Notes under the pieces: model-generated
The model's input: only the letters and a program-made list of their open reading frames with translations
Told to the model about the DNA's origin: nothing
Database searches by the model: none
Made by a program: the position numbers and the translations under genes
Part shown: piece after piece, positions 11,971 to 48,848 of the stretch
How positions within the stretch are numbered: the stretch's first letter is position 1
How the letters are laid out: every line of letters starts with the position of its first letter
Source: Epiperipatus broadwayi
Lineage: Eukaryota > Animalia > Onychophora
Length of the DNA: 64,000 nt
Assembly (NCBI GenBank): GCA_028023455.1
Contig: JAQFVV010000002.1
Span: 27,032,001 to 27,096,000, forward strand
Reading direction: 5' to 3'

Positions 11971-12020
11971 ACTAATATTGGTATTGAACCATTAAGCATC
12001 ACATGATCACATTTCCTATA

Positions 12021-12056
12021 CTGACGAAGGCCACAAACCAGAAACTAGTCTGGGGA
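12021..12056 (+). ncRNA. Hammerhead lacking the 5' strand of stem I (inversion junction)
   Basis: CTGACGA-A-GGC/cacaa/ACC-A-GAAA-CTAGT-C-TGGGGA. Confidence 0.6.
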
Positions 12057-12458
12057 TATTGGATGAGTAGGCATTAGATAGGGATTTTATGCACAAGCCT
12101 TCTGGCATCCATTGATTACTCTGTTTAGCACAGGTGGCAATACTGTATGGAGAGTTTTGCTCTGTTTATCAACAATTAATGTGCTAGTATAGGAAATGTG
12201 ATCATGTGATGCTTAATGGTTTAACACCAATCCTGCCTAATAGAATAGTGGTGGCTATGGTTGTAAAAGAGCCAAAGACACCAAAATGTATGGGTGCTGA
12301 ACTGAGTTCAGATCCATATGACTATATAAGCTATTGAGCTTAGATTGAAAATATTTTTTGTGTTTTCCAATTTCATTCTCATAGTTTTGTAGTTAAGTAG
12401 AGATAAAAGGTGGTTGCTAGAGGGTTGCATTAGATCCTAAGATCTAGATGCAGTGCTC

Positions 12459-12500
12459 TCCTCACTGATGAAGACCACAAGCCAGAAACTAGTCTGGGGA
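12459..12500 (+). ncRNA. Type I hammerhead, core intact
   Basis: TCCTCA-CTGATGA-A-GAC/cacaa/GCC-A-GAAA-CTAGT-C-TGGGGA; stem I TCCTCA:TGGGGA; palindromic ACTAGT; predicted cleavage after 12494. Confidence 0.75.
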
Positions 12501-12819
12501 TATTGGATGAGTAGACATCAGATAGGGATTTTATGCACAAGCCTTCTGGCATCCATTGATTACTCTGTTTAGCACAGGTGGCAATACTGTATGGAGAGTT
12601 TTGCTCTGTTTATTTTAATATTGGTATTGTTTAAGTGTTGACTGCTTTCCCGTATTTATATATGTAATATTAATTGATTCTTTTAAACCAAATAATTTGA
12701 CTCCATACATAAAGCCACTTGTACTTTTTCTATTGGAGAGCAAATGATTTTTTTGTATTTAAAAATTTTAAATGCTTTTTAAAATGATTTTTTCTAGTGA
12801 GAATCATAAATAAGTAGCA

Positions 12820-13220
12820 GAAATTTTTAGTTTATTCCAAAAGCTCTTTTACAATGTGATAACAAGATAAACTTATTGATAGCATTTTGTTCCTGGCCTA
12901 AATTGAAACTGCTCTAAAAGTAGATGGTTCTCAACCAATGACATAATTTATACTAAGGTGTTTTTCCTAACAGTTTACAAAGAACATATAATAATGATAT
13001 TGGGATATATTTTTTTGGGATTATTGTAAAATTTATTTGGTTTTATAATTACTATAGTTTTTGCTTTCATGACAAATTTTTGAAATAGTTTCTCTATAAA
13101 TAACATTGCAAAACTCACTTTAGTTTTCTGTTCTACATTTTTTAGAAACTCTGAAAGTATGTTATCCACTTTTATAGGTTATTTAGTTTAAGGGAACCAA
13201 GGGCCTTAAAATTCACCAAC
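12820..13220. repeat. Interspersed repeat; a second copy lies at about 42330-42620
   Basis: Shared blocks ttcctggcctaaa, gttctca and tttatttggttt in the same order. Confidence 0.4.
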
Positions 13221-14231
13221 ATGTTTTTAAAAGTTTTTGAATTTAAAAAACATTTACAAATTGAAGCATCATTTATATTTTCATCTTGATTCCAAAATAT
13301 GATTTTATGTTATACAATTTTCATCTAAAGGTTTATGATTATTAAAATAGTCAGATATAGTATCAAAAATTAATTTTAAAATAAAAAATACTATTGTGGG
13401 AGCTCAAAATATGCTTCTTAATTATGTAAAGCATAATCATTAATTATTAAAACTTCAACAAAAAGAGCTATATAAATTAATGAGAAAACTTCTTTAGCCT
13501 CGGGGAGTGTCTTGGCAACATCAAAAGCTAACAATTATCTCTGTTTACATGGATATTATCTCATCATTTCTATTCTATATTGTAACAATCTATGGAAATA
13601 TTTAATCCTTTTACTCATCTACATTTGCAATCAACATTTAACATGAATAAATGAACAAAAATAGTATAAAAGTTAAAAAAAAAATTAATGCATTGAAAAA
13701 AAAGTTTTACAGTCTCTTAGTATAATAAAGAATCTTTTGGTATACATGTAATCCAAGCTTAATTTTTAGAACTTATAGAATAACATTACACCTAGTTTAT
13801 CCTAATGAAAAGATGATATCTCCAAGCCGCCTGCAATGCCATCTCTAATCATTGAATGCGTACATAGCAACAGTTTTACTATTTGCTGCAAATATTTTAA
13901 GATGCTAATATATGTCTGGATCATAAGTTATGACATGAAATGTAACAATGTGGTTCATATCTTTGAGATCATCTTTAACACTCATTCTTGTGATTCATGC
14001 TTCTCTGTTATACATAGAACATTTCAGTAACAGTTTTATCCAATTTAAAACAAAATTAATGCATTATTCCGATAAGCATCACATGATCACCATCTCTTAT
14101 ACTAGCACATAATTGTTTATAAACAAGGCAAATCTCTCCATACAGTAGTGCCACCCTGTGCAACCAGAGTAATCAATGGATGCCAGAAGGCTTGTGCATA
14201 AAATCCCTATCTGATGTCTACTCATCCAATA

Positions 14232-14273
14232 TCCCCAGACTAGTTTCTGGCTTGTGGTCTTCATCAGTGAGGA
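14232..14273 (-). ncRNA. Type I hammerhead, core intact
   Basis: Same sequence as the HHR at 12459-12500. Confidence 0.75.
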
Positions 14274-14596
14274 GCTTTGGATCTGAGAGCACTGCACCTA
14301 GATCTTAGGATCTAATGCAACCCTCCAGCAACCACCTTTTATCTCTACTTAACTATAATACTTGAGAATGAAATTGAAAACACAAAAATAATTTCAATCT
14401 AAGCTCAATAGCTTATATACTCATATGGGTCTGGACTCAGTTCAGCACCCATACATTTTGATGTCTTTGGCTCTTTTTCAACCATAGCCACCACTATCCT
14501 ATTAGGCAGGATTGGTATTAAACCATTAAGCATCACATGATCACCATCTCTTATACTAGCACATAATTGTTTATAAACAAGGCAAAACTCTCCATA

Positions 14597-14632
14597 CTGA
14601 TGAAAGCCACAAGCGAGAAAATAGTCTGGGGA
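14597..14632 (+). ncRNA. Hammerhead lacking the 5' strand of stem I (inversion junction)
   Basis: CTGATGA-A-AGC/cacaa/GCG-A-GAAA-ATAGT-C-TGGGGA. Confidence 0.55.
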
Positions 14633-15589
14633 TATTGGATGAGTAGGCATTAGATAGGGATTTTATGCACAAGCCTTCTGGCATCCATTGATTACTCTGG
14701 TTGGCACAGGGTAGCATTACTGTATGGAGAGTTTTGCCTTGTTTATGAACATTATTCCAATGTTGGTTAAAGTATGAAACGTCATATTTCATGTAAATGA
14801 CATGCTTAGGTTTTAAAATTTTTTTGATGAATAGCTAAATGATATTGTAATGCAACCCATGCATTGATTCAAAGATGGTGTTATAGAAAGTTTGGAAAGA
14901 CAACCTGTCACCACTTATTCAGCTTACATTTAACTAGCCAATTCATTCTCTTTCTCTCTCTCACTCTATTGTAGAAGCCAAAATATTGCTTCTAAAGTAG
15001 AGAAAAATATCACCATTGTCTAAATATAAATTAGTGCATAAGTAATTGTAATATACATCAAAATATCTTAAGATGTCATATGGTGGTTGAAAAGTGAACA
15101 TGTCTGCTAGTCTTTCATGCAGGAGCAATCTCCTAGGACTTTACTGAATTTAAATAATTGAGTTCAAAATATCAATTGGAGATAAATTTTATATTCAACC
15201 AGTCTATTATTATTACTTAATTTTTATGTGTTTAAATAAAAAGAATTTATTATTACTGGGTGCAACTAGTTAATATCAACTCCGAGCAATTATATAAAAG
15301 TCATTTTTCCACAATAACTTATCTATTTTATTTTCCATGTTCTTCAAAAATATAAAACTAAGATAACAGATTCTTTCTGCCTTTTTGATGACAGTATTTG
15401 TATTTCAAGTGAAAATTATTTTATTTATTACTGGCACCATATTTATGTCTTCACAACCATCATAATTCAAAATCATCAATACATTTCTTATCCTTCTTCA
15501 TCATTCACAGAGTTACTCAAAATATCATCATAAATATTATTTTTTGTTTCTAAAGACAAATAAAATTATACAAATATAAAATGGTGTTA

Positions 15590-15840
15590 CTTTTACTGGC
15601 ATCATTATCATTTTCAACCATTATCAATCTGCTGCAGGATGAAGATCTCTCTAAGTTAAATCCATCATCTCTAATCTCTAGCCTTTCTTCTCCACATCAT
15701 CCCAGCACACTTCCTTATTTAATACATACATCTCACATATGGTCTCTTTCTAGATCTTTTACAATCTTTTGGAATCTAGATTAAGATTTCAACTATCCAT
15801 CTATTATCATCTTTTCTAACAATGTGACCATAGATAAATT
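15590..15840 (-). mobile_element. RTE-like LINE 3' end fragment
   Basis: KRSRKRPYVRC-like (GRPxxRW) region; homologous to 20740-20915. Confidence 0.55.
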
Positions 15841-16192
15841 ATAATTTTTTTACCTTTTATGTTCTGCATGATTTAGTGCAGTGGTAGAACATCAGACTAT
15901 GGAGCAAAACATTCTTGAATTGATTCCAGTTCTGGAATTTGGTGCTCAAACTTATGAACTTCTGAACAATAAAGCCATTCAGTAATTTATTTATTTATGA
16001 TAACTTTTCATAGATATTTTTCATGTATATTATATAATATAGTTAAAACAAGAATTACGATAAAAAATATACAGAAGCTTATGAAATACATGGGGTATAT
16101 GAGCACAGACTTTCACACAACCCACCACCCTCCACATTATCTCATAACACTGACACACTTGAACACATATATGTTGAAAAGACAAATAATCG

Positions 16193-16234
16193 CCAATATA
16201 TGTATTTCATGCTAAACCAGTAATCATCAGTTGG
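16193..16234 (-). ncRNA. Isolated hammerhead relic
   Basis: CCAA-CTGATGA-T-TAC/tggttta/GCA-T-GAAA-TACATAT-A-TTGG; stem I CCAA:TTGG; stem III one change from the palindrome ATACGTAT. Confidence 0.45.
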
Positions 16235-16962
16235 TCCAGATTCTTTACACATACATGTTATAAGTGCTCAGATATATATTAACATAGCCAATCCTCATAC
16301 TTTAATGGACAGGCTTCAATCTACTCCACACTCCAACTCTTCAACCATCCATCCAATTGAAAATCTGATGATGGAATGCTCAAAGGCACCCTAAGGCTGA
16401 GATTCTTGTCACGCCCATGTTGGCCTAAGGTCAATCTGACCCCTCATGTATAGGACATAATCCATTTAATACATATACAAGGGATGGGTAGACATCTCTT
16501 CTATGTAATAACTGAAATACACAGGCTTATTATATATCTGTGTCTATATACTGTGTCTATATATGTAATATATAGGGTATATGAAGTAAAAAATAAAAGT
16601 ATTAATAAAATGCTATATTAAAACAAAATTGAAAGCAATGAATTGTTGAATAAAGGTCAGTAGAATAATTTTAATTTTAATGTATATTTAGAGACAAAGC
16701 ATAAATATTTTAAAAGAATCCTTCTTAAACAAAAAAAAGAGAAAAAGTTACAATAAATATTAAGCAATAAAAAGTAAATTATATTTATGATATAAAATCA
16801 TTAAAGCATCACATGATCACCATTTCCTCCTATGATTATACAAGCTGTTATAACAGTAGAAAACTCTCCATACTGTAGTGCCACCCAATGCAAACCTTAG
16901 TAATCAATGAATGCATGAAGGTTTGTGCATAAAATCCCTATCTAGTGCCTATTCATCCAATA

Positions 16963-17003
16963 TCCCCAGACTAGTTTCTAGCTCATTCTTTCATCAGTGA
17001 GAA
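16963..17003 (-). ncRNA. Type I hammerhead, core intact
   Basis: TTCTCA-CTGATGA-A-AG/aatgag/CT-A-GAAA-CTAGT-C-TGGGGA. Confidence 0.7.
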
Positions 17004-17073
17004 GTCTTGGATCTGATGCTGGAGTGTTGCATTAGATCTTAAGGTCTAGGTGCAGTGCTCTCAAATCCTAGGC

Positions 17074-17112
17074 TCCTCACTGATGAAAGTTACCTAGAAA
17101 TTAGTCTGGGGC
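17074..17112 (+). ncRNA. Type I hammerhead, shortened stem II
   Basis: TCCTCA-CTGATGA-A-AG/ttac/CT-A-GAAA-TTAGT-C-TGGGGC. Confidence 0.65.
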
Positions 17113-17335
17113 TATTGGACAATTAGGCACTAGATAGGGATTTTATGCACAAATCTTCTTGCATCCAGAATTATTAAGTCTTGCTGTGGGTGGCACTACT
17201 TATATGGAAAGTTTGCTACATATTTATGATAAGAAAAAAAATAAAGCATGAGAAAAATGTAAAATAGTATGCAAACTTATTACAACATTGTATTTAAAAA
17301 ATGGTTTATTAAAAATGCAAGATAAATGATGATAC

Positions 17336-17515
17336 CTTTATACTTAGAAATCCAAACTGCTGGTCCACAGTTCTTTAAAAAAGAGTTAGAACTATGTAAT
17401 GGGTGAGTATTTGGGCCACGAATCCAATATTTTTTATTATATTTGATGAAAACCTTAGGCAAAATCCATTCTTGAGGAGTCATATTAGTGAGCTTTGGCA
17501 AAATATAAAAAATTG
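17336..17515 (-). CDS. Internal exon (NFLYLPKLTNMTPQEWILPKVFIKYNKKYWIRGPNTHPLHSSNSFLKNCGPAVWISKYK)
   Basis: Poly-T...tag acceptor, AAAG|gtatc donor; 180 nt open, phase 1 to 1, compatible with the 3835 exon. Confidence 0.65.
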
Positions 17516-17650
17516 TCTAAAAAAAAAAAACAACAACTGAATAATGTGTGTGTATGTGCATATATACAAAAGAATTATTGATTACTGAAGTGCATACAAG
17601 TATGTGTTTGTATACCTCATTAATGAATTACTTCTTCAATTTGTCTAGAT

Positions 17651-19293
17651 CAGAGACGAGGAACATTTTTTTCTGCCAAGTACCATTTGATATTTATAAT
17701 ATCATTCACAGCCATACGAAATTATTGACTTAAATATTAGCCTGCCATATTTGATCAAGAATTTAATTTATCCCTAATTATTAAAGATGGCACCCTTTTC
17801 AACTGGAAAGCCAATTTTAACTTTTCCTTTTTAAATGAGGGTTATAATTTTTTTGTGAATTAAAACTAAAGTATTATCCTTATTAATGATTGTTCCATAT
17901 TTAATGACAATTTAATAATTTGCCTTGTAACTGTTTTTCGACATAATTATATTCTGGAATTTTTTATCTTCTGGGTAGATTAATTCTACAGCAGCTAGAA
18001 AACAGTCTTTTGTAAACTCCCCTTCAGAAAAGGATTTTGAATTTTCTGCCTTTTTTAAAAATAATGTACCTTGTTTCCACAGAATTTTCTGATGTATTTA
18101 TACTTTTTATAAAATATGTCAGCTACTTGATGAAGAGCTCTTCCAAGTTTTCTATTTTAATATTTATTTCTTCCTCGATAATTTTGTTATAATCAGAACA
18201 TTTTAATAAATAATGCCTCTTAATATTGTGTTATTTATTAATTGAAATATTTTCTAGATAATTGAAATATTTTCTAGATATATCAAGCAAATCAATTGAC
18301 TATTTCTTTCTATTAAAAAAACATGCAATGGCTTGTTTCTTTTGAAATGCCTGATTTTCTGTACCAAATTTTCTTATTTTGCTTGGTGCAGCCATCCTAG
18401 TAAAGAAATTAAATGCAAAATAATAATAATAAAATGAATATAGTTTGTCTGTGAAAATCACTATTGTAATATATGCAGTTTAAATTAAACGTACATACAA
18501 AATTATCTTTATTCTAAAATATTATTTTATTGTTAAATCTTTAAATTTTGCTACTAATATTCTAATCATAGACGTTAGCTTGAAATGCAATCAATTGTAA
18601 CAAACTAATTAAACAGATAACGAAGGAATTTAATTAGCAAAACCCAATCTAATTAAATCCCACCTTAATTTATAAGTTACTCCAGAAAACAAAAGAAAGA
18701 AAACATATAAAAGGGAGGCCATTTTTGAAAAGATCAACAGAGTGAGTACAGAGCGTTTTAAGTGAATTAGAGCAGAGCATTAGTTGCAAAGAACAGCGTG
18801 GAAATTGCGTATTACCCTCATGGGGAAAGAAGAAAAGTCAGACGTAGAAACTATACGTTCAGAATTATCGTGCGAGTATTCGTTATCGTGTGTTCATAGT
18901 GTATTTTTCTAACACAGCTGGGCGGGAATTAGAACTTTGTATAAACTGTAAATCAGTTAGTATCGATCTGTTTTGAGAATTAAACCAACTAGTTCGCAAA
19001 TTAACTTTTGTGTGCAGTAATTGAAGAGTCAATATACTGCAACTATAAAAACAACAAATGCCCTCAGATTAAATCCATAGTCAGATAGACCACCCAATAT
19101 ATTTTTTTTGGAATATTGCATCTCTGACAGAATAAACTAGAACTATTATAAAGATTGGAAAGAGACAATAAATATTTAAATAGCAGTTTTATACAGAATC
19201 ATTTTATATAAATTTTTAAATATGTCCAATGGCCAGATTAAAAGCTTTCAATGGGCCAGATTTGTCCCATGAGCCTGAAGTTCCCCACTTCTA
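17651..19293 (-). mobile_element. Internally deleted hAT transposon (SPIN/Charlie, GTF2IRD2-like transposase)
   Basis: Ends cagagacgaggaac / ttccccacttcta; 8 bp TSD gtctagat / gtctaaat; peptides MAAPSKIRKFGTENQAFQKK and KSFSEGEFTKDCFLAAVELIYP. Confidence 0.85.
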
Positions 19294-20185
19294 GTCTAAA
19301 TAAAGTGTTTTATAATTATCTGAATGAAGCATAAATATTCTCAAAATACTTTTATTAATTATTTGTTACTCAAAACAACATTTATATAATGTTCCTAAAT
19401 TTAAAAAAAAGTTTGAATTAATCATCGAATATATCAAGAATATGCATATAAATAATAAAATTTTATAAGTTTAAACTGAAAGAACTTATAAATTCGGTTA
19501 TATCGATGACTACAACTATTCAGCTCTTATGAATCTTTATAACCACAACAAAATAACTATTTTTAAGCAAAATATAGCCAATGGAAGAAAATATTAAAAT
19601 GTGCAAAATAGGTTAGAATAATTTGTGACATTTCCAACTTTAATGTGACTGTATGACTTCAGAAAAAAAAAAAATATTATGTCAAATTCCATATTTCAAA
19701 AATGGCAATTAAAAATATGGTTAATATAAATTCGTAGGTTTTGTCATCTTAATTTTTTTAAACAAATTAATTTTCATTAATTCTTTTTAGTGCTTTTATA
19801 TTTTTAACTTTGTATTTCAATATTATCTTTTGCATTCATGCCAAAAACATAAATCTGGAATCTCCAATCTTTCAAATGAATAGATATTTTTATTTGATTT
19901 TTTTTTTCTAAATTAAATATAAAAATCTTTTCTAAATCAAAAACTTATGCTGAATGTGATTAAAATTATAAACAATTATTTATTTATTATTTTATTTCTT
20001 TTCTAAGGAATTGTAATAGAGAGATAACCCTGATTATCACTGATAGTACTTTCCTGTTTTTGCCATTCAATTAAAACAATTTATTCTAACATCTCATTAC
20101 TCAAAGCTAAATTTTTATTAAAATTCAGTCGAGTTTCTTAAATACAGAATGAACAAAATTATATTTTTTTTCCTCATATGTCATA

Positions 20186-20271
20186 GCATCGTCCGGGAGG
20201 CGAACCCACAACCGTCTGCAACCAACTACTTGCTTGCAAGGCAGCTGCGGTGACCTCTCAGCTAACAACGC
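20186..20271 (-). mobile_element. tRNA-derived SINE head / tRNA pseudogene (Ala-TGC-like)
   Basis: Acceptor stem GCGTTGT:ACGATGC, A box TAGCTGAGAGG, B box GGTTCGCCTCC, CTTGCAA loop; short tail and A-run follow. Confidence 0.6.
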
Positions 20272-20599
20272 TTGTTCTTACTTTTTTAAAAAAAAATAAA
20301 ATAATTTATTCTCATTTTGAAATATTATTTTGGAATATCTATGTATATTATATGGATTGCAAATAAATATCATTTCATAATTATTGCAAATATGTACAGA
20401 TTTTTTCCTGAATTAATTATCTTAATTTAAATTTACTCTAGAAAAATCTACACACACGAATAGTAAGAATTTGCAATTAAAATAAGTAGACTTTTGCAAA
20501 AATTAACCATTTACATGAAATAAATTGAATATATAAAAAAAAGCAGTCAGAAATTAAGAGTGAGCAGTAACATAACCATAAGAAGATAGTAGCAATGTG

Positions 20600-20915
20600 A
20601 TATCTAATTAGTGTCTTAAAAGTGTATTGTGCCAGGCAAGTACAAAAGAAATCTTTGAGAGAGATGATCCATTTATGGAAATAATAATATAGTCACTTAA
20701 AACCAAGTATTGAATTGCCCAAAGAGTTTTTCCTAAAAGCATATCAACATCATCATTGTCAACCATTATCAATCCACTACAGGATGAAGGTCTCTCCAAT
20801 TCAATCCAATTTCTCTAATCTTTAGTCTGTCTTATCCACATCATCCTTGCATACTTTATTTCATCCATCCATCTCACATGTGGTCTCTTTCTGGATCTTT
20901 TACAATCTCTTGAAT
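20600..20915 (-). mobile_element. RTE-like LINE 3' end fragment
   Basis: KRSRKRPHVRWMDEIK...W..LERPSSCSG. Confidence 0.6.
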
Positions 20916-20916
20916 C

Positions 20917-21675
20917 GGTTTGTGCATAAAATCCCTATCATCTACTCATCCATCATCCCCAGACTAGTATCTAGCTTGTGACATTGCATCTAGATCTTAG
21001 GATCCAATGCCACCTTTTAGCAGCCATTTTTTACTTATTTGGTTAACTAGGATTCCAAGATGAAAACACCATAATGCTCCAACCCAAACTTGTATAGTCA
21101 TATAGATTTGAACTCAGTTCAGCATCTATACATTTTGGTTGTCTTTGGTTTTTCAAAAACCATAGTTACCATTATCCTATGAGCAGGATACTTATAAAAC
21201 CATCAAAACATCACACGATTACCATTTCATATGCTTACACATGCTGTTAATAAGAGTACAAAACTCTCCATACAGTAGTGCCACCAAGTGCAAGCCTTTG
21301 TAATCAATGGATGCTGGAAGGTTTATGCTTAAGATCCCTATCTAGTACTTACTCATTCAACATTCCCAAAAGGGTTTCTAGCTTGTGGCTTTCATCAGTG
21401 AGGAGCCTTGGATGTGAGAGCACTGCATCTAGATCTTAGGATCCGATGCCACCCTCCAGCAGCCATCTTTTACCTATTTGATTAACCTCCAGCAGCCATC
21501 TTTTACCTATTTGATTAACTATAAAGCTATGAGTAAGTACTAGACAGGGATTTTATGCACAAACATTCCTGCATTCAATGATTTCAGAGGCTTGCACTTG
21601 GTGGCACTAGTATATAAAGAGTTTGGTATTCTTATTAACAGCATGTGTAAGCATATGAAATGGTGATCATGTAAT
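20917..21675. mobile_element. Family A copy A4, head-to-head (minus arm to about 21535, plus arm about 21531-21675)
   Basis: One HHR with the core deleted (about 20956-20982), one with a mutated stem III (21364-21404); internal tandem duplication of about 33 bp at 21453-21518; no TSD seen. Confidence 0.8.
21364..21404 (-). ncRNA. Hammerhead relic, cleavage site mutated
   Basis: TCCTCA-CTGATGA-A-AGC/cacaa/GCT-A-GAAA-CCCTTT-TGGGAA. Confidence 0.55.
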
Positions 21676-22096
21676 ATGCATATATGTGTTAAAAGACTTT
21701 GTAATTCAAACACATAATGTTGTTTATAATAATATCTTGAGTGTGCGAAAAGTTAAACACACAACTAGAAGATAAATAATGGAGACTATATTTATTTTTT
21801 TATGAAATTCCAATCTATTTATTACTTTTTAATCTTATTTATTATTGTTAAATAAATTGCTTTTTTGCTACAAAACTTCTGTTAAATTTATTTCAAATAA
21901 TTGATGCTCTCCTGACTGAGATAAAATTAAATACCCTTGGGATATAGCACATTCACTGTAAAAAAGAAAAAAACTTTATTTTTTTAATATTCCTTCATTC
22001 CAAACCAAAGGATAGAAAGATTTAAAAATAATAGTTTTATTATTGTTCATATTTCATATACTAAAAAATTGTATTTAGAAAAAAAAAAAAAATTAC

Positions 22097-22792: not shown

Positions 22793-23436
22793 CTAATTAC
22801 AAATTATAATTGTTGAAGTATTGATGGGATAAACATATTGATGGGATAAACATCACATATGATTATGATCAATTGCTACAATATTCAAGTTTCAACATTA
22901 AATTGGTTGTTGTGAAATATAAAAACAGAAAAGCCTGACTATCATCTCTATGATAATATTTAGGTGTTTTGAATTTGACAAATGTGTGTTATAGTAATGG
23001 AGATTTATCTGAAAAGCTTTGAAAAAGTGTGTCACAAATGTGAATTTTGATTGGTTACATATATTTATTAGGTGTAATAGTCAATTTATTATACTGCATT
23101 TGCCTGAAGGTTTGTGATGATGGTATATTAGATGTGATAATATGTTAGTCTATTTCCATTATCTATCATTAAATATTGAATGTATAAAAAATTTTAAACT
23201 TTTATTTAAACTTTTCAAATACAAACAACATGTTACTTAGTAATAACAACCTGTGTTGTCTTTACATACACATTATATTGTTATTAATAAAGCAAGTCAT
23301 ATATAATGTGACATTGCTTTATAAGCTTGTATTTACAAAAATGAAATATAGAGAGCATACCAATAGCTCAAACAAGCTCTTAATTGATGAGTGCGGTAAG
23401 AGAAAATATTCAAAATCTCTATCCAAAATACTCTTA

Positions 23437-23482
23437 TCTCCAGACCGTTTGATTTCAAGCTTATGGCTCACCTCAGTGAGGA
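23437..23482 (-). ncRNA. Hammerhead variant (A9U)
   Basis: TCCTCA-CTGAGGT-G-AGC/cataa/GCT-T-GAAA-TC/aaac/GG-TC-TGGAGA. Confidence 0.55.
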
Positions 23483-24017
23483 GCTAGAATATTCAAACAC
23501 TAGATCCAAAATATCAACTCAAAACCCAGCACTTATTTAATACGTAATATTTAAGTAGAAACTCTAAAGTTTTCAGTCATGAAAATGTCGTTTACTCCAG
23601 CTATTGAACTTAAATAGCTATATGGGACTGAACCAAATTCATATCTACCATATATTAATAACCTCAGCATAGCCAAAGCCATAAAGGTATACAGAGAGCA
23701 TACCAATAGCTCAAAGAAGCTCTTAATTGATGAGTGCGATAAGAGAAAATATTCAAAATCTCTATCCGAAATACTCATCCCCATGACTTGCTTTATTGAT
23801 AATTATAATTTTACCTTTATGGATTTGGTTATGCTGAGGCTATTAATATATGGTAGATCTGAATTTGGTTCAGTCCCATATAGCTATTTAAGTTAGATAG
23901 CTGGAGTAAAAGACATTTTCATGTCCAAAAACTTCGGAGTTTCTACTTAAATATTACTATAAAATAAGTGCTGGGTTTTGAGTTGATATTTTAGATCTAG
24001 TGTCTGAATATTCTAGC

Positions 24018-24063
24018 TCCTCACTGAGGTGAGCCATAAGCTTGGAACCAATTGGTCTGGGGA
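24018..24063 (+). ncRNA. Hammerhead variant (A9U, A13G)
   Basis: TCCTCA-CTGAGGT-G-AGC/cataa/GCT-T-GGAA-CCAATTGG-TC-TGGGGA; palindromic stem III ACCAATTGGT. Confidence 0.5.
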
Positions 24064-24317
24064 TAAAAGTATTTCGGATAGAGATTTTGAATATTTTTTC
24101 TTACCACACTTATCAATTAAGAACTTGTTTGAGCTATTGGTATCTCTCTGTATTGCATTATATTGTATATTCCAATAAAATATCAAATGATTCCAGCATA
24201 TATATTGTTGTTTAGTAGCATTTTTTTTTTTTACAATACAGCTATATCACCCATTATAAACTTTGACAATTAATAGTTGTCAAATGATAGTGCTTAATAA
24301 ATTCCTATCCTGACCAT

Positions 24318-24806
24318 CTTATCCAATATTTATAGAGTAATTTCAATCTTATGATTTTCACCAATGAGGAGCTTTGGATTTTGGAATAATATATGTGAAC
24401 CTCTACGATCTAATGCATTTTTTTCTAGAAGCCATCATTTATCTTTCTTTTCATTTATCAATAGTGAAAAACATATAAAGGTTCTTCAATCTTGGCCAAC
24501 TTGCTTGTATTTCATATTAATCTGAAACCAGTTCAGTAGCTATGGCTATAGTTGTTAAAAAAACTAAGGATATTGTAATATATAGAAATTGAACTGGTTC
24601 TATACAAATATACAACCACGTTGGCTAAGATAGAAAGCATTATATCTTGTTTAATTTGGGATTTATAGTTTGATAGTATAACAGAAAAATAAATAATGGT
24701 TGCTAGAAGATAAGTGCATTAGATCTTAAAGGGTCCAGATGCACCATTTTAGGATCCAAAGTTCCTTTCTGATAAGCTTGAAATTAGTCTGGTGATATTG
24801 GATATA
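24318..24806. mobile_element. Old, diverged family-A-like fold-back (A6) with HHR remnants
   Basis: gcattagatctt, ggatccaaagttcc and ctgataagcttgaaattagtctggtgatattggat in the plus arm, mirrored in the minus arm. Confidence 0.6.
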
Positions 24807-25539: not shown

Positions 25540-26300
25540 TGTCACAAAATGGTTACATTAAATTGTATTACCTCTTAAGAGTGCTGACAAATTTCTTCCA
25601 CACAATTCAATTTCATTCTACAACAACTGTCATGCCTCCCTCATAGATTTATGCTTCTACTCTTCTATGCTTCATTATCATCTCAACCTAACCTTTCATC
25701 TTTCACCATTCTCTGATCACTCTCCTCAAATGCTTGTACTTAATCTCAATGGTATGAACTAATACCACCTATGCAATTCACCAAAAAAAGTTTTTCTGCA
25801 GGCCCAGCTGCACTTCTATTTAAAACAATATTGAATTCCTTTAGAGATAAAAAAAAAAAAATGCTCAAATGGCTGTCCAAAGTGACAAGGAAGCTACATT
25901 TGATTCAGTCTTTGCTGATATCTTAATCCAAATACTTCCTAATGCAGCAAGACTCCGAACCACCTTATATCTATTAACCAACCTACTACTAAGCCAGGAA
26001 ATTCACATTACTCTCAGTGGAAGATCATCATCTTCATTTGTTCCCAGTCAATCAGCATCACAAGGTTCATCATTTAGTGCCTTATTATTTGTGATGTATA
26101 TCAATCCCCTCATAAATAAAATACAGCTAAAAATTCCAAGCATACAAATTCCACATACTCAATTATCTATATTATGCTTAGCTTATATGGATGACATAAC
26201 CATCTTTCTTGCCTCTAAAAAACTTCTGCCTATCTTACAAAAAATCCTTAATGATTATACTACTGACTTTAAGCTCAAATTTAATGTTAATAAAATTTAA
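25540..26300 (+). mobile_element. Internally deleted LINE (endonuclease end fused to RT)
   Basis: IDLCFY and FSDHSP (endonuclease), then TFDSV, SQGSSFSALLF, YMDDITIF and LKFNVNK. Confidence 0.75.
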
Positions 26301-26337
26301 ACAAGACATTTATTTTTTTATATAGCGTGATGTTTTA

Positions 26338-31617: not shown

Positions 31618-31653
31618 CCCCAGACTGATTTCTGCTACTGGCTTCCTCAGTGA
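31618..31653 (-). ncRNA. Hammerhead motif
   Basis: TCA-CTGAGGA-A-GC/cagta/GC-A-GAAA-TCAGT-C-TGGGG. Confidence 0.6.
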
Positions 31654-39559: not shown

Positions 39560-40160
39560 TGTTCTACTAACAACTGTGACAAAGATCACCTATGCAAAAA
39601 AAAAAAAGCAACAATTCTGAAGTAAAATTTCAAACTGGCAAGAAAAGAAGGAATATGAAAATATTTAAAATTGGTCCATTAAAAATTAAATATATGGCTT
39701 TATGTAAAATGGCACAAAAAAGAGTTAACGATATGAAAAAATATAATTGCAAATTGATAAAGAAAGATATAGATGAGAATAAAAATATACATAAAATCTT
39801 AATATTGGAAGCTGTTACTAGTAACAAAAAGAAATGATGAAAGTAATATCTTAAAACATGTGGGGGAAAAAAGAGATAATGATATAAGAAAATATAACTG
39901 CAAATAGGTAAAGAAAGGTATGAGAGAATAAAAATATACATAAAATCTTAATATTGGAAGCTGTTACCGGCAACAAAAAGAAAAGATGAAAGGGTCGTCA
40001 TAAAATATGGGGAAAGATTCAATAAAGAATTATATGATATAGAACAAGAAAAGAAAATAACCCTTACAAATATCTCTGAATTGCTGAATATTTTAAATAA
40101 TAAGATGAGACATGTAATTAAATCTATGAAGGAGGGGGAAGTTCCATGAAATGATGGAAT
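39560..40160 (+). mobile_element. Decayed LINE fragment with a tandem duplication of about 149 bp
   Basis: ataaaaatatacataaaatcttaatattggaagctgttac occurs twice; GEVP*NDGI (KxPGxDGI-like) near 40140. Confidence 0.45.
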
Positions 40161-40252
40161 TATTATTTATTTATTTAGTGTATATTACTGTTAAGCTAAG
40201 ATTAATAGCTAAGGTGAAGCTATAAGTTTGTTATTAGTGAGCCTCTATTTAT

Positions 40253-40297
40253 GGACTCAGCGCTTTTGGAGCACCTACAGCTCCATAATCATAGTCC
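40253..40297 (-). ncRNA. Inactivated hammerhead at the PLE 3' end
   Basis: GGACT-[ATGATTA]-T-GGAGC/tgtaggt/GCTCC-[AAAA]-GCGCT-G-AGTCC; perfect stems I and II; palindrome AGCGCT; core mutated. Confidence 0.6.
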
Positions 40298-41207
40298 TTT
40301 TTACATGCTGTTGATTCTATGCAAATGCATGCAAATTATAACATCCATCTTTTCGAGATCGCGAAGCACGTGTCTTTTCTATTGATTGACATGGCATCGC
40401 TGGTGATGTAACATGCCTCCTTAATCTTTCTCTTAACATCGTTCCTCTCTGTGCACACGATATCGGCTTTAGACGGCTCAAATCTATGGCTTTGCTCCTG
40501 CTGATGATCAGCAAATACTGATCTGCCCTCTCCTTTAGTTGTGGCTTTTGTATATATATATATCTATGCTGAGCCAGTCTATTGCTCACTGTGGCCCGAG
40601 TTTCCCCATAATATACCGAATCACATCCTGTCTGCGGGCACACAATTTTATAAATGACATGGGGGGTTTCTTCTATATTTCTTTTATCTTTGGTGTTGTT
40701 GATGAGCCTATTTGTGTTTGGAGGGGTTCTGAATCCAAGTTTGAATTCCTTCTGTAATATTTTACTGAAATTTTTAGCTACTGTAGATATGTAGGGTATA
40801 ATTAGATGTTGTCTGTTATCTTTTGTGTTTTGTTGTAGTCTTTTATGAAAGCTTGCAATCCTTTTGGTTATTGTTTTGTGATCAAACCCACGTTTATTAA
40901 GTCACTGATGTAGCTGGTGATGTTGTTTTTCCTGTCTGACTCCAATTTGCACAGGTGGTGATTGCGAAATAAAAAGGCAGACAGCCCTGCAAGTTTGGGT
41001 GCTTTAGGGGATTTTGCGAGCGGATGGATGTAGCTTCGGACGCATAAGGGTTTAATTATCATGGAATAAACCAATGCTAACTTCTCTCTTTTAATTTTCA
41101 AATCCAAATACTTGACCGTGTTTTGCTCATCTTCGTGTGTGCAATTAAATGTGAGGTTGGAAAGAGCGTGGAGTTCATGTAAAATCTCCGTGATAGCATT
41201 TAGTGTA
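40253..41207 (-). mobile_element. 5'-truncated Penelope-like retroelement (RT C-terminus, GIY-YIG endonuclease, HHR)
   Basis: LTFNCTHEDEQNTVKYLDLKIKRE...IIKP; PHVIYKIVCPQTGCDSVYYGETRATVSNRLAQHR; HHR relic just downstream. Confidence 0.85.
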
Positions 41208-44200
41208 TGAATTTTTTTTTTGTCTGCTTAATTATTATCAAAATATTATTTTAAAAACATGTAGATTCCAACCAGGAAATAAATTCATTAATGAATTTAT
41301 TACGTGTTTCAGTTCTGCTGTAGCCATAGATTTGACAGTCATTAACTATATAGCTTATGCTTAATCTTTGTTCATATTTACATAGGTCAGTTGCTGGTAA
41401 ATGTCATTTTAAATGAACACAATGACCAATGGATTGCACAAATTTATTGATTAAGTCTAGTTGTGTCTAGGAAAATTAAATCTAACTTGCTTTATTGTTA
41501 AATATGGAAAAAGAAATATGATAACTTTATAATTAGTCACCTTTTACAATTTGAAATTTTTGGTAAACATGCAAAAAGGGGGTCTTGATTTTAGTAAAGT
41601 TGTGGGTGACGAAGGTCTGATCTGCTTAACACCTTTTCATACATTTTCTGAAAGGTAACTTCTTTTCTGATATTTCATGGAGAAATATGTAAAAAAAATA
41701 AATAAACCAATGTAAAAGAATAGTCTTTAGTGTCCTAGTAATATTTGTCATGGCAATATTTTGTTGAATATCTGAAAGTTGATATGGGAATATTTTTTCT
41801 ACAATCAGAGGCATAGTATCCATTAGAAGAATAAGATAGTGCAAAAGAAATGTCAATAAAGTTCTTGTATCACAATCCCAAATAGTGCCAGTCAACTTTC
41901 CAAGTAAGTTATTCCTAGAAATTAATTTTAATCTAATTTTACATTCAGATTACAAGATAATTTTCTGTTGATTAGATAAAAAATTGAACATACTAATTTC
42001 ATTTGATCCCAGTATTCAAAGATTTCTAATTTTTTCATATGCATATTGAGTGACTTTTCTACTTCAGTTAAAGGATCTTTTTTTAAACTCAAATCAAAAT
42101 CATATGCATTGATAAATTTTTTGCAGCTAGAAGACCAGTGATGAATATATTAAATAAAGTAGGTAAAAGAACTGAATTTTGATGTAGATTGCTCTATAAA
42201 ATTTTGTATATACTATGATACCATTTGGCATCTCTTGAATTTTTCTATTGGAAAGCATTTTCTTAAATAAGTCAATAATCTAGATCATATTTCAGAAAGA
42301 AGCATAAGCTGAAATTAGCCAATTAAGGTAGCACCAGTCTAATTTATTTTGAAAACTTTTTTAAACTAGTTGCTAAAAAAATAAAATTTATTTACAGTAG
42401 CTTCTTCCTGGCCTAAAATCAACCTGTTTTTGGAGGTAGCTTGTTCTCATCTACTGGCAAAATTATCATTAATAATTTTTCAAATAACATATAGAAAAAA
42501 AAAAGATGATAATTTTTTGAATCATTGCTAGGTTTATTTGGTTTAAAAGTGCTCCTAGAGCCTTTCTTGGTTTAAAATATTTAAAGAATGAACTCCTTTC
42601 TTGGTTTAAAACATCAAGAGAAAATTCCAAGATATGATAACTGTAATAGACATAAAATTATATAGAGCAGTTTATTAGAGAATAGACATCTACAGATTTT
42701 ATCAAATTGATATTATAAAAGAAAACCTTGCAATTCTGCCTAATGTTGTTGTTTTTTACTCTATCAATCTTGGGTTTAGAAATATGACGTATAAGATTGA
42801 TAAAAAATTATCAAATCTTATGATTAGATCATGTAAAATTTTACTTCTTTATGGTTTCTCTCCACTTCTCTTTTCTAGCATCATTCAGTGATTTTACAAG
42901 TTTATCAGCAGTTTCTGGATCTTTCTAAACAAAAATTAACTATAAATAGCACTGTTTCATTCCAAGTGGAAGTAAATTGATTCTGATATCCACAAAAGAT
43001 GAATTTTCTGTATGTTATTGTGTTTTATAAAGCTATTATAGTATGAAAGAAATGGGGATTGTATTAACATTTTGTTTAGTTATTGACTTCATTGACTCCA
43101 GTCAGTTTTTCTTTAAATTTTATCTTAGAATAGAATAACTTTCAATGTATGAATGTGGATTCCAAGAATGATTAGACTTGATTTATATGACTGTGAAAGA
43201 AATTGTGCAATATTAACAATAGTTAGGCATTGGTGAATCAAACAAGCATAAATCAGTTGCTGCTGCTGTTTCCATTTGTCTGAATATTTCTCCTTGTTTG
43301 GCATAAGTGCTTGTTATTTAAATCCAGCCATTCTAAAAGTTGACGGCTGTTTGATTTTTACATATTCTCAAAGACTACTGTGAGAATTAAATGTAGGAAG
43401 ATTAGGAAAAATAGTGTAAAGATAAGATGTATTGGAACTGAGGAGAGGGATTGTAAAATGTGCATATATAAATATTACCTATCTGAACAATGATTGAAGT
43501 TTCACACGAACTATCTTCAATAGAAATTATTCACTTGACAAGATAGTTTGAAACAAAAGTGGCTATAGTATGTTTAGAAAGGATTCATCAACAACCAATA
43601 TAAATCCAGGAATTTTAAGATGATATGTGTTATTAGGAAAATTATAAGTTTCTTAAAATACAATTACACCAATGTTGTGCTGAATAATTAATTTGCAGAG
43701 GATCTTTATTATTGATATACTCTTAATGTTACATTAATTATATTGTTTCTTAGACAAAAAGAACATTGAATAGAAGATAATCTAGAATTTGAGGTGTTTC
43801 ATGGTTGCCAATATCATGTTAATTTTCATTTCAAAAGTTTAGAAACCTCAAATCTAGTTTTGGCATAGCTATCTCCCATAACATGACTGAAATTCATGTT
43901 AGCAGTTTTTTTTTTTTGTTGTTTTTTTTTTTTGGTATTTTCAAAATTTCCTGTCTTTAACCAGAAATTCATCAAAATGAAATGTGCTATATTCACTTTG
44001 CATGCTGCTTGAAGAGTATATATATATTGTAACATTATAGTATCATTGTAAATTGGCTATTATAAATTTAAACTGTAAAAATATTTATTGGCTTTAACTT
44101 TTATAGTTAAGCAAGTATATTCATCACTGTCATTGATTATATAGCTAGAATATAATCATTATCATATTTAAATAGTCTCTCATACTAATGTTTATGAGAA

Positions 44201-47200
44201 ATATATAATTTTATAAAGCATTTTTGAATGGCTTTCCAAGCAGGTTTTTTTTTTATAAACTTCTATATTTGTATAAAGAAAATACGTATGTTCATATTTC
44301 AGTGTTATTCTTATTAAGGAACAAAGTTATCGAATTGTATAAATTAAAAGAAGTGTTCACACACATAAAACAAATAATTCAAAAATAGAAATATAGAATT
44401 ATAAATCCAACATTACAACTCTAAAGTATATTGATGAGGGATAGAACAAACAGCTTTTACATTTATATTTTGTGTGCATGTGTTGACACTTATGTGTTTA
44501 ATTTTTTTTCATATATAGCAACGATTGATTTAGTTTACTAGAATATTTATTGATATTCATTAAAATATTAATTTAAATTCAATTGAATAAATATCTGAGA
44601 ACTATAAAGTTTTATGATTTATTTTAAATGCTTGAAGAATTATTTTAAAAACCCAGAAATAAAAGTGAAGCAATTAAATATTAAAATTGTTATTTTCTTT
44701 TTTTCTTCATTTTTAAATATTATTTCTAAAGTTTTACAGCCTTGATTAAAAAATTTTAGCATCAAGCATTTTGCCCATTAAAAACCATGACAACTTCTGA
44801 TATTTCATGGATAAATAAAGAAACTCCAATGCATGATGGAATCATGTGATAACTAGTATAAAAGCTGAAGTTTGGAAAACCTATAAGTCATCACAAATTC
44901 TTATTGTATTCAGGACCCTAAATAGATTCAAATTTTTAAATAGACATTTTGTTTCCACCTACATGGTGACTGGCTAGATTAACTAGTCAAGTGTTTACCA
45001 TGACTAGGCAAGGGACCACATCATTCTAGGAGAAAGTTGGATAGCAATAAATAAATCAAAAACCATCATTAATTAATTCATTAATTATTTAGTTCAAATA
45101 ATCTCATTTATTACTGTCAATTGTTAGTGGGGAAATGGACAAATTGACTTATGGAATGCTGTCTCACAACTTCAACAATAAATCGCTAGATTTTTTCAAT
45201 TGAAAGTAATGGTTTTAATAGCTGATATATTTTGGAAAATTATATTTATTAATTTCAAATAAGGTGATGATGTTTATTTTCAAATTATTGTAAAATAATT
45301 ATGTTCTTCACTACAAAAAAGGATGCGTATTAAATCTCAATAGTTAATAATACGCTGATGCGTTGCGATGAAACTTTTTATGTAATAATTTGTAGGCTTT
45401 TGTATATATATTCTGATTTACAGACTTAGCACTTTCAGAGCCCTTGTTGCTCCATATTCATAGTCTTTTCAGATTATTAGTTATATGCAAATGTATGCAA
45501 ATCGCCTCCGTAAATTTATCTCATCTTTAATTATGTAAGGAAAAACTTTAAATAATAATTTTTCAACTCAAATATGCCTCTGTATAAACTTGTTGCTTAG
45601 AGAAATAAACTTTGATTTAAAAAATATAATGAAAATCGCTTTTGTTATGGATGGTAAACTATTTGCTTTATCAGAGATAGGATCAGAATTACTGGCATAA
45701 TGAATTGAAAATCTACAAATAATTATATATCTTAAATTAAAGAAGTAATGACACTAATTTTTTGGATAAAACTATAGCACCTGCTCAAATGAATTAAATT
45801 GCTGCATGGAATAAACTACAAATTTGTATCCGGTGCTTAAGAAATTGCATTATGAATTATCAATGCTAAATATTTAATAACATTAAATGGATAATGGATT
45901 AGAAAACCTAAATATTAAAATGCCATTCATGAATTATGGATTATTAAGGCAAGTTTTAATTGTGATAAACATACAAGTTATAAGCAATCTTATAAAATAA
46001 TTAATGTGTTAAATATAATTACCTTGCATTAACAAGTGTGCTAAGTGAAATTTATTAATCTTTGTGTTTTGATCCAGAAATGATTATATTACAAAGTGAA
46101 ATTATTTGTGCTTTACATAATCTGTGATGCTGTTATTTTAAAAATATTTGTAAAGTCCCAAGAACTCTGAAATATTTTGCAAGTATTAATTGTTCAGTGG
46201 GATAAATTTTAAATTGTCACAACCATTAGAGAATTATTCAATGCATTTTTATAAAATTGTTTCTTTCTTAGTTAGTTAATATTATAGTTGTTACTAGTGT
46301 AATAAAGTTTTCTCAGATATTACTATGCTCAGGTACAAGAAATTTATTGTTGCTATTGAATGGGATTAAATATGATTTACCTTAGGTTTAGGCTCTATAA
46401 ATGTAAGTAATTATTAAACTTATATAAAACTGTGCTTCATTTCAAATATTATATGTTTTATGGGTTCTTAAGTTTCAATCTCAAAGTTAAATGGAGTTAA
46501 TCATCTTTATTTAGATAATTAGATCTGTAAAGAATATTTTATGCATCACTCATATGTTAGTATTAATTTTTCATTGTTATATAATATGTAATAAGGCATT
46601 CTAATGACCTAATTATAATTTGTTAGTGGAGTAGCACTCTTAATACTTAATTCTGCAAATGAATCCAGTAAAGAATCTTGAGACAGAATAAATAAGCTCA
46701 ATATAATAGATATCATCTAGGTATGTTAAGCAATGATTTGTACTTGTTTCTATTAAAAGAGTGAAAACTTTTCTAGCATTATTAAGTAAGGTTGATTAAT
46801 AATTGTTTAGTTAATTAAACAAACTATTTAAGGACGATTATACAACATTTATCTTTTATCATTATGATAATAATTATTATCCTCCAGTATTTAAACAGAG
46901 AATTAGTTTGAAATAATAAACAACCTATTCTTATTTAATGTTAGTATCTTCACAACACTGTCTGATAACACACTTTTCATATCCCAAGTTCAAATTGGAT
47001 TTAGAAAATTAATAGTAATGTTTATTAGATATTTTATATAACTTTCTTATTATCATTATTCGTTTTTATCATTTATTGTATATTGTGTAATAAAGTGTTA
47101 ATTTTTTTTTAATATTTCTTGTATGTCACTATTAAAGAAACATCATCATTGTATATTGATAAAAAAGATCATATTTAAGATAATAGATTACGCATAAAAT

Positions 47201-47416
47201 CTATGTCGATTAAATACATCATTATTGTATTGATGCTATCTGAAATATAAAAGTATTGGGCTTAATGGTGTACATAAAATTCCTTTCACATTGCCATATC
47301 CTAAAATGCATAAACACACTTTATATCCATGTATTTTTTTCTTATATAATTCTGAGATAAATCATTAATCAACTTCATATTTAAAATTTCTAGCCTTAGT
47401 TTTGTAGCCAGATGAT

Positions 47417-48067
47417 AATCCTATGGGGCAGGATTGGTATTAAACCAATAAACATTACATGATCACCATTCTTTATGCTTACACAAGCTGTTTACACAGA
47501 GGTAAAATTCTCCATATAGTAGCGTTACTCAGTGCAAGCCAGAGTAATCAATGGATGAAGAAATGTTTACTCTGGCTTGCACTGAGTGGCCCTATTGTAT
47601 GGAGAGTTTTGCTTCTGTGTAAATAGCTTGTGTAAGCATAAAGAATGGAGATCATATGATGTTTATAGGTTTGATACCAATCAGGCCAATAGGATTATTG
47701 TGACTGGTTATTAAAGAAACAAAGAGATCAAAATGTATGGATGCTGAACTGGGTTCTGATATGACTATATAAGCTGATGAGCTTGAATTAAAAACATTAT
47801 TGTGTTTTCATTTTGGACTCAAAGCTTTATAGTTTGCTAATAATGTAAAAGGTGGCTGCTGGAGGGTTGCATTAGATCCTAAGTGCTATGTGCAGTCCTC
47901 TCAGATCCAAGGCTTCTCACTGATGACAGTCACAAGCTAAAAACTAGTCTGGGGATATTTGATGAATAGGCACTAGCTAGGGATTTTATGCACAAACTTT
48001 CCTGCATCCATTGATTACTCCGACTTGCACTGAGTGGTGCTACTGTATGGAGAGTTTTGCCTCCGTG
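47417..48067. mobile_element. Family A copy A5, head-to-head (minus arm to about 47563, plus arm from about 47567)
   Basis: TSD ttgtag(c/t)cagatgat at 47402-47416 / 48068-48082; HHR at 47914. Confidence 0.85.
47914..47955 (+). ncRNA. Hammerhead relic (G12A)
   Basis: TTCTCA-CTGATGA-C-AGT/cacaa/GCT-A-AAAA-CTAGT-C-TGGGGA. Confidence 0.6.
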
Positions 48068-48848
48068 TTGTAGTCAGATGATGATATAACAAGATGTTAA
48101 CTAAATATAATAATATATGATATGATCACCACTTTTTATGTGTATGGAGAAAGTGGCTACTGTTCTAAAAAGTAATATAGTTATACAAAATCACATACAT
48201 AATCATTTAAGACACATATATATATATATGTAATATTATATATACCTTATCAATTTGTGAAATAACGTTAGGTGCCAATAAAGGATTTTTATAGACTATT
48301 CTTATAGAAATCCATTCAATCATCAAACGAACAGAAGGTTGTATAGCATCTAATGAAAGGACAACTAATAGCTTATTCAATAACTCCGAATAGTGAATCT
48401 AAAATAAATACACATTATAAAATGCAGAATATATTTTCAGTTATTTACACAACCATTTTAAATGGAAAATGATTATGCATATAATTAAAGCATTTCTGCA
48501 TGGTTATTAATAATATTTATTTTCACTGTAAATACTTTCTTGCTTTAATATTATTATACTAATTAATCTACAATGTATATTTTATTTTAAAAATATACAT
48601 TTACATTTATGAATCTGTCATAAAAGATCATTATTAGATAATATGCTTTGTTATTATACTCAGCATTGATAATAATTCTAACAATAATTCAATCTATAAC
48701 ACTCTATTACAGAGCTATCTATAAGAGCATGAATGTAATCAATGAACATCAAATGATAATACAACCAGAAACCCAAATATTTATCTGTGGGAAACAATGG
48801 ATTATGAATATATATTTAATAATTAATAATATAGTAATTTATATGTCT

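Follow-up and report, generated by a model that had tools for sequence, protein, structure and literature searches.

The question raised by this locus is what kind of element a short, non-coding, hammerhead-bearing repeat can be when its copies are fold-backs, and which machinery could have inserted it. The window, that is, the whole stretch of DNA analysed here, comprises 64,000 nt of Epiperipatus broadwayi (JAQFVV010000002.1:27,032,001-27,096,000); it is AT-rich (27% GC) and belongs to a genome of 5.6 Gb, and about 6% of it consists of the fold-backs of this one repeat, which we call family A. We suggest, with a probability of roughly 0.8, that family A is a non-autonomous, retrozyme-like retroelement of the Penelope-like element (PLE) system, carrying a minimal type I hammerhead of the PLE type. 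An earlier, sequence-only reading of the same DNA had proposed a dispersed, non-autonomous, PLE-mobilised family, and had considered that the combination of fold-backs with target-site duplications (TSDs) might be undescribed. The first proposal has gained support, since the unit is non-coding, at least 965 candidate copies were found in the genome, and the insertion anatomy matches that of coding PLEs; the second has to be given up, as this architecture is already a hallmark of PLEs (PMC8557442) and a mechanism for it is known from in-vitro work (PMC11167929).

Copies were located by BLAST of one unit against the window, and were then mapped onto a natural 466-nt reference unit (L028:1370-1835), in which position 1 is the first base 3' of the predicted hammerhead cut; all unit positions given below follow this numbering. 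The search recovered the five clear copies (A1 to A5) and the one decayed copy that had been recognized before (Table 1). The family A unit is 444-466 nt long and repeats within the copies, as had been claimed for a period of 444-454 bp: the internal period measures 444 nt in A1, where a 150-nt direct repeat of 97% identity recurs in the forward arm at this spacing, 454 nt in A2, and 439-448 nt in A3 to A5, and it reaches 466 nt in the youngest genomic subfamily. The unit has a GC content of 38-39% and is non-coding, its longest open reading frame (ORF) being 42 amino acids.

Each of the five copies in the window consists of a (-) arm followed by a (+) arm, with the 3' ends facing outward and the variable 5' ends meeting centrally, so that the description of two opposed, 5'-truncated pieces holds for all of them; four are flanked by TSDs, again as described earlier. 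The exception is A4, for which no TSD was found and whose left arm stops early. The arms of one copy resemble each other closely: those of A2 share 92% identity over 160 nt, and those of A5 are 86% identical to one another versus at most 78% to any other copy. One of the two arms carries a tail, which lies on the left arm in A1, A2, A3 and A5, and on the right arm in A4. A single polarity shared by all five copies was considered and rejected because of the opposite position of the tail in A4.

The same anatomy is found across the genome. All 30 loci retrieved are fold-backs of a (-) arm and a (+) arm, including a ten-unit array that opens with a short inverted arm. A genome-wide tabulation of orientation, TSDs and end points had been proposed as a check of the sequence-only reading, and the insertions sampled here are in favour of that reading. 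Perfect flanking repeats of at least 11 bp surround 15 of 26 insertions (58%), compared to 0.15% of 648 mismatched flank pairs; given this difference, the TSDs are not due to chance. They are 11-15 bp long, and the target sites are 79% A+T without a strong motif. When end positions were read after trimming to the TSDs, each of the 20 classifiable insertions had one short end (S, unit 112-132) and one long end (L, unit 168-184), with no S/S and no L/L combinations; if both ends were chosen independently, such pairing would have a probability of ~1e-6. The difference between S and L is a templated tail of 44-70 nt, present on one side only. The outer ends of family A are not equivalent, which corrects the earlier reading. 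Within an insertion the two arms are mutual best matches in 14 of 22 cases, and this closeness of sister arms indicates that a fold-back arises in one event, from a single lineage of templates, and not as a nested pair of insertions. Where the arms meet, they overlap by 2-7 nt in ~14 of 22 insertions, and ~7 of 22 contain 2-7 nt of filler.

The E. broadwayi genome also contains coding PLEs, to whose insertions those of family A can be compared. A six-frame search of the genome gave more than 10,000 GIY-YIG candidates, and one coding PLE family has intact ORFs of 875-901 amino acids with a C-terminal GIY-YIG domain, in a tandem of 3135 bp that follows an inverted arm. Submitted to hmmscan, these intact ORFs matched no Pfam family, although GIY-YIG had been found in the six-frame search; the proteins are extremely rich in K, N and I. 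Three coding PLE loci with resolvable ends were used for the comparison. One (L034) has a TSD of 12 bp, a one-sided tail of 46 nt and inverted arms that are 100% identical; the other two (L045 and L049) have TSDs of 12 and 14 bp, respectively, each with a tail of 52-60 nt and with an S end at unit ~424-432 combined with an L end at ~483. In the coding PLEs, a hammerhead-like box is followed by the ends at distances of ~90 and ~145 nt; in family A the ends lie ~120 and ~180 nt downstream of the hammerhead. It is because the insertion anatomy is the same, with the same numbers, as that of the coding PLE insertions in this genome that we consider family A to be mobilized by PLEs.

This view agrees with what is known of PLEs from other systems. 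Their hallmark combines an adjacent inverted, 5'-truncated copy, a partial tandem, and a tail that only one of the ends carries (PMC8557442). With purified PLE protein, both strands were nicked and extended in vitro, and reverse transcription (RT) began at two internal positions, which set the limits of the tail (PMC11167929). Family A has this signature in full, sharing with PLE insertions (Evgen'ev & Arkhipova 2005; PMC8557442; PMC11167929) the 5' truncation, the partial or multiple tandems, the inverted truncated copy, the tail at one end, the AT-rich targets, the variable TSDs, and a hammerhead ~100 nt upstream of two RT start windows. It differs in its unit of only 444-466 nt, which, having no ORF above 42 amino acids, is without a reverse transcriptase/GIY-YIG ORF and thus is not an autonomous PLE; in its tail of 44-70 nt, compared to the 30-40 bp usually quoted; and in the inverted arm and the S/L pairing, which look obligatory in family A (20/20) and are found "often" in PLEs.

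A close relationship to PLEs also raises the possibility that the copies are not an independent family at all, but solo or partial fragments of the pseudo-long terminal repeat (pLTR) of a coding PLE left behind by extreme 5' truncation. As both the hammerhead and the RT start sites of PLEs lie in the pLTR and ORF start, such truncation would yield the same short, non-coding anatomy (PMC8557442, PMC11167929). We nonetheless consider this explanation improbable. Arms that are longer than one unit run on into another identical 444-466 nt unit and never into an ORF, and PLE coding sequence was found inside the insertion in none of the 30 loci; in addition, nothing of the unit's sequence is present in the PLE families that were sampled. 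The array mentioned above is also hard to reconcile with a pLTR fragment: at G000:C12510:794593-799828 (L027-L029), ten units follow each other with an exact period of 466 nt, and the whole, including its short inverted arm, is enclosed by a TSD of 9-13 bp. Its units, distinguished by T/G at unit position 174 and by a five-change variant, occur in the order c-a-b-a-b-a-b-a-c-a, which amounts to a higher-order period. From this alternation it follows that the array template was at least dimeric, or else that it was copied from another array; an origin by rolling-circle replication from a circular monomer is disfavoured.

The hammerhead of family A is likewise closest to those of PLEs. In motif scans its elements appear in the order TCCTCA, CTGATGA, A-GGC-CACAA-GCC-A, GAAAC-TAGTC, TGGGGA, i.e. 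the layout of a type I hammerhead with its three core boxes, in line with the stem I (TCCTCA:TGGGGA) and palindromic stem III (ACTAGT) recognized earlier; the cut predicted after 12494 also proved to be placed correctly. Stem I has 6 bp, the stem II region 13 nt with a stem of 3 bp, and stem III 2 bp, the sequence ACUAGU around the latter being a perfect palindrome. The core boxes in type I order are present in A1, A2 and A3, and this is the dominant form among 84 motifs of the retrieved loci. If both flanking A's are taken as unpaired, the pair G10.1-C11.1 (GGC/GCC) occurs in 73 of 76 motifs, with a helix II of just 3 bp; older copies such as A4 have A-U at the first pair of this helix where young copies have G-C, which is no more than a hint of compensatory change. 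In the minimal hammerheads of PLEs, A9 is followed by an additional nucleotide and helix III is palindromic; their activity in vitro is low, and dimers are believed to be the acting form (PMC4209133). The motif of family A shares with them the CUGAUGA, GAAA and GUC boxes, the extra nucleotide between A9 and 10.1 (an A after CUGAUGA), the closely spaced repeats, and the palindromic ACUAGU helix III, which implies a dimeric active form. It differs in its helix II of 3 bp, where 6-8 bp have been reported, in a second unpaired A 3' of this helix, and in the A-U first pair of the older copies. Co-folding two motif copies through the ACUAGU palindrome is better by 5 kcal/mol than folding two monomers. 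Ribozyme activity of the motif is no more than plausible.

Table 1. Family A in the window, with strands where assigned. Copies and arms were placed by BLAST and unit mapping, hammerheads by motif scans; S and L denote the short and the long outer end.
Feature	Position	Strand	Description
A1	11987-12615		(-) arm then (+) arm
A1 left TSD	11973-11986		TAATATTGGTATTG; 14 bp, repeated directly without mismatch at 12616-12629
A1 inverted arm, 36 nt	11987-12022	-	L outer end at unit ~181, tail-bearing; inverted repeat with 12186-12221
A1 forward arm, 1.33 units	12020-12615	+	5' end at unit ~436; S outer end at unit ~119-122
A1 second hammerhead	12021-12056		5' strand of stem I cut off by the arm junction
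A1 complete hammerhead	12459-12500	+	stem I 12459-12464 : 12495-12500; CTGATGA at 12465; predicted cut after 12494
A1 right TSD	12616-12629		14/14 match to left
A2	14074-14749		(-) arm then (+) arm
A2 left TSD	14062-14073		CATTATTCCGAT; 12 bp, one mismatch to 14750-14761
A2 inverted arm, 1.1 units	14074-14587	-	L end at unit ~174
A2 hammerhead	14232-14273	-	intact
A2 forward arm, 160 nt	14590-14749	+	5' end at unit ~430; S end at ~122
A2 right TSD	14750-14761		12 bp, one mismatch to left
A3	16793-17219		(-) arm then (+) arm
A3 left TSD	16781-16792		ATATTTATGATA; perfect 12 bp with 17220-17231
A3 inverted arm	16793-17012	-	L end at unit ~184
A3 hammerhead	16963-17003	-	variant stem II
A3 forward arm	17017-17219	+	S end at ~114
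A3 hammerhead in forward arm	17074-17112	+	
A3 right TSD	17220-17231		12/12 match to left
A4	20917-~21680		(-) arm then (+) arm
A4 inverted arm, ~1.3 units	20917-21533	-	internal 33-bp duplication; outer end stops early at unit 49
A4 hammerhead	core box at 21398	-	decayed
A4 forward arm	21529-21680	+	runs through tail; L end near unit 172
Old relic, (-) part	24267-24380	-	68-70% identity to unit; ends and TSD not resolvable
Old relic, (+) part	24715-24803	+	as for (-) part
A5	47417-48068		(-) arm then (+) arm
A5 left TSD	47403-47416		TGTAGCCAGATGAT; 14 bp, one mismatch to 48069-48082
A5 inverted arm, 141 nt	47417-47557	-	outer end at unit ~207; old lineage with a longer tail
A5 forward arm, 1.1 units	47564-48068	+	S end
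A5 hammerhead	~47917-47955	+	inactivated; GAAA box reads AAAA
A5 right TSD	48069-48082		14 bp, one mismatch to left

We describe family A as retrozyme-like since, in common with the metazoan retrozymes that lack long terminal repeats (PMC7229834; 10.64898/2026.07.22.740005), it consists of non-coding, low-GC tandem units with one type I hammerhead each (38-39% GC, with arrays of 466-nt units), has TSDs longer than 4 bp (11-15 bp), a strongly self-paired unit RNA, and a genome in which PLEs co-occur. PLEs are known to co-occur with retrozymes, and have been proposed to mobilize them (PMC7229834; Li, Clavereau & Pollet 2026 preprint, 10.64898/2026.07.22.740005). The unit RNA of family A is predicted to fold with -166.6 kcal/mol (z = -6.3), its 5' part pairing with sequence that immediately precedes the hammerhead; in this model, the strong self-pairing is compatible with retrozyme-like circles but is not evidence of them. 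There are also clear differences. Animal retrozymes carry canonical hammerheads with normal helices and loop 1-loop 2 contacts, and minimal motifs have been assigned to PLEs, not to retrozymes (PMC7229834); the family A motif is of the minimal type, with a 2-bp helix III and a 3-bp, A/A-flanked helix II. At 444-466 nt, the unit reaches or exceeds the largest size reported (150-450 bp), the majority of copies are fold-backs of 0.4-3 units that lie dispersed instead of in long arrays, and neither an inverted arm nor a tail is described in PMC7229834 or 10.64898/2026.07.22.740005.

A short hammerhead element could alternatively be SINE-like (short interspersed nuclear element), of the Sm-alpha type, and be mobilized by long interspersed nuclear elements (LINEs) through target-primed reverse transcription of a single strand, with fold-backs arising from occasional twin priming. 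The window does contain a fragment of a LINE-type reverse transcriptase at 25869-26300, and TSDs of 11-15 bp are typical of LINE-driven insertions as well. In the twin priming of L1, both target strands reportedly prime cDNA synthesis on the element RNA, and the products are joined by microhomology to leave an inverted 5' part; the second priming is said to be occasional and to occur at an arbitrary internal position, giving an inversion and not two arms with fixed 3' ends. Double priming in family A is, on the contrary, the rule, and it proceeds from defined start windows on both sides; the fold-back is obligatory (30/30 loci). Internal starts confined to two fixed windows, and a tail on one side only, are characteristic of PLEs. 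There is, moreover, no poly(A) or simple-repeat tail at either outer end, both ends being ragged unit sequence, and ARAGORN and Rfam found no tRNA, 7SL or 5S head inside the copies. We thus give a SINE-like origin very little credence. Spread at the DNA level, be it as a fold-back or MITE-type DNA transposon or as a satellite dispersed by recombination and segmental duplication, would account for the long inverted repeats in each copy, for the existence of tandem arrays and, through unequal crossing-over, possibly for the higher-order variant pattern of the ten-unit array, but it is just as hard to believe, as the arms differ in length and their meeting point in the unit changes from copy to copy, the inner ends vary against outer ends that are fixed in the unit, in the manner of 5' truncation, the TSD length varies between 11 and 15 bp while a transposase gives a fixed length, the tail is always on one end, and an entire array plus inverted arm lies between TSDs.

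Several observations weigh against assigning family A to the PLE system as a retrozyme-like element with a hammerhead. The genome-wide sample of insertions was chosen by similarity to one full unit, so that its arm lengths are biased. The sequence of family A is shared by no autonomous PLE among the 19 GIY-YIG loci that were compared with the unit out of the more than 10,000 candidates, three PLE ORF families and twelve further loci being among them, and the PLE families sampled carry another, non-canonical hammerhead-like box. Helix II has only 3 bp with an A on either side, and the minimum free energy structure of the isolated motif does not have a hammerhead shape. The Rfam hammerhead models, a check proposed along with the sequence-only reading, went against it, with no match at the gathering threshold in the 64 kb, at E<=10 in 13 kb, or even at E<=10 in 101 nt centred on the motif. 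Finally, just one of 44 arm 5' ends lies at the predicted hammerhead cut and many arms read through hammerhead sites, from which it follows that the templates were mostly uncut there; together with the alternating variants of the array, this makes it unlikely that a self-cleaved circle of one unit usually served as template.

The scarcity of arm ends at the cut indicates that hammerhead cleavage is not needed for insertion; in the purified PLE system it is dispensable too (PMC11167929). The 5' ends of the arms are also somewhat enriched at unit 422-452, the 5' edge of the hammerhead core, where 8 of 44 are found compared to ~3 expected; the enrichment itself may be real, and it could reflect a transcription start or a pause of reverse transcription at the ribozyme. 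An apparent second hot zone of 5' ends at unit 47-116 was dismissed as largely an artefact of selecting loci that contain a full unit.

Fixed outer ends, variable inner ends, one-event fold-backs with TSDs, and multi-unit templates are given directly by the anatomy of the insertions, and on this basis a mechanism for the mobilization of family A by PLEs can be outlined. Multi-unit loci would be transcribed into multimeric or circular transcripts that span hammerhead sites, a step of which part is visible in the copies themselves. A PLE reverse transcriptase/GIY-YIG enzyme, presumably supplied in trans, would then nick both strands of an AT-rich target ~11-15 bp apart, and each 3'-OH would prime reverse transcription inside the RNA, in the S window ~112-132 nt or in the L window ~168-184 nt past the hammerhead cut. 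With S used once and L once per insertion, a templated tail of 44-70 nt would result on one side. Both cDNAs would run for variable lengths, from 36 nt to 10 units, until their growing ends are united centrally by 2-7 nt of microhomology or a short filler, producing the TSD-flanked, head-to-head fold-back. For the ribozyme, the literature suggests that helix III would be built from two copies via ACUAGU, and that it probably trims multimers into units that can circularize. We speculate that a dimeric PLE ribonucleoprotein copies one multimeric or circular RNA from both nicked strands at once, using each start window exactly once, though we regard this more specific proposal as tentative and rather doubtful. 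If true, family A would constitute a natural, high-copy, in-vivo record of dual-strand priming by PLEs, and its hammerhead, with a 3-bp helix II between two A's, would not be a motif in decay but a working variant that acts only as a dimer.

Among the major mechanisms of retrotransposition, the integration of PLEs is understood least, and its sole biochemical study revealed dual-strand priming and two internal RT start sites in vitro. The insertions of family A are short and easily aligned, and would record in vivo the priming on both strands, the two start windows (one each per event), the templated tail, the microhomology joining of the cDNAs, and the use of multimeric templates. They would also provide direct anatomical evidence, beyond co-occurrence, that PLE enzymes move non-coding hammerhead repeats in animals. 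Repeat annotators that do not expect composites of inverted and tandem units are likely to mis-model family A.

The abundance of family A in the genome was estimated from loci chosen for other reasons, 106 kb of which contain 4-5 copies; as a rough average this corresponds to one copy per 20-27 kb, and the densities seen would give a total of ~10^5 insertions, which is a rough figure only. In the window, five copies lie within 13 kb. The sequence-only reading had singled out this high local density, and it is indeed ~9 times the rough average, yet ~100 such clusters are expected by chance in 5.6 Gb, and the local copy density is unremarkable once the choice among many windows is allowed for. 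Low-depth sequencing runs labelled as four organisms (X1, X2, X3 and X9) each contain thousands of short family A contigs at 85-99% identity; from these contigs, family A is abundant in at least four related organisms and is common to a group of related species.

Some minor observations concern the coding PLEs and their possible traces in the window. The pLTRs of two coding PLE families (L043:7296-7345 and L034:2880-2930) carry a hammerhead-like motif with a perfect helix II of 5-6 bp, an extra nucleotide after position 9, and GAAAC-GU-U, in which the 5' box reads UUGAAAA and not CUGANGA; U3 and A8 here replace the C3-G8 pair, and the two core positions may have covaried naturally, the genome being AT-rich. 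A 34-bp AT-rich match to the family A unit in L034 was dismissed as spurious, since it lies at the wrong position. The reverse transcriptase fragment in the window is a 143-amino-acid ORF on the (+) strand next to the old relic (RVT_1, E = 5.6e-13); as a PLE partner it was rejected on inspection, as it looks LINE-type with its YMDD-type motif. A tblastn search of the 64-kb window with the PLE proteins of this genome gave no match.

Other repeats and RNA-like sequences also occur in the window. A 342-bp sister repeat at 23271-24166, "family B", does not match the unit of family A when compared by BLAST at E<=1e-4. At 20184-20272 (-), ~650 bp from A4 and outside all family A copies, ARAGORN predicts an 89-nt tRNA-Ala (TGC), where Rfam gives a weak tRNA-Sec-like match only (E = 0.04); this may represent either an intron-containing tRNA gene or the head of a tRNA-derived repeat. 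Weak microRNA-like Rfam matches at 16947-17128 are the A3 fold-back itself. Further hammerhead-like motifs, belonging to other families, were found at 1070-1105 (+), 2947 (-)/3226 (+), 31650 (-) and 32966 (-)/32982 (+), two of these sets being head-to-head pairs. The motif at 1070 (+) is clean and minimal, its helix II having 5 bp and its palindrome reading ACGU, and the one at 31650 (-) has a short helix II with an A on each side, as in family A.

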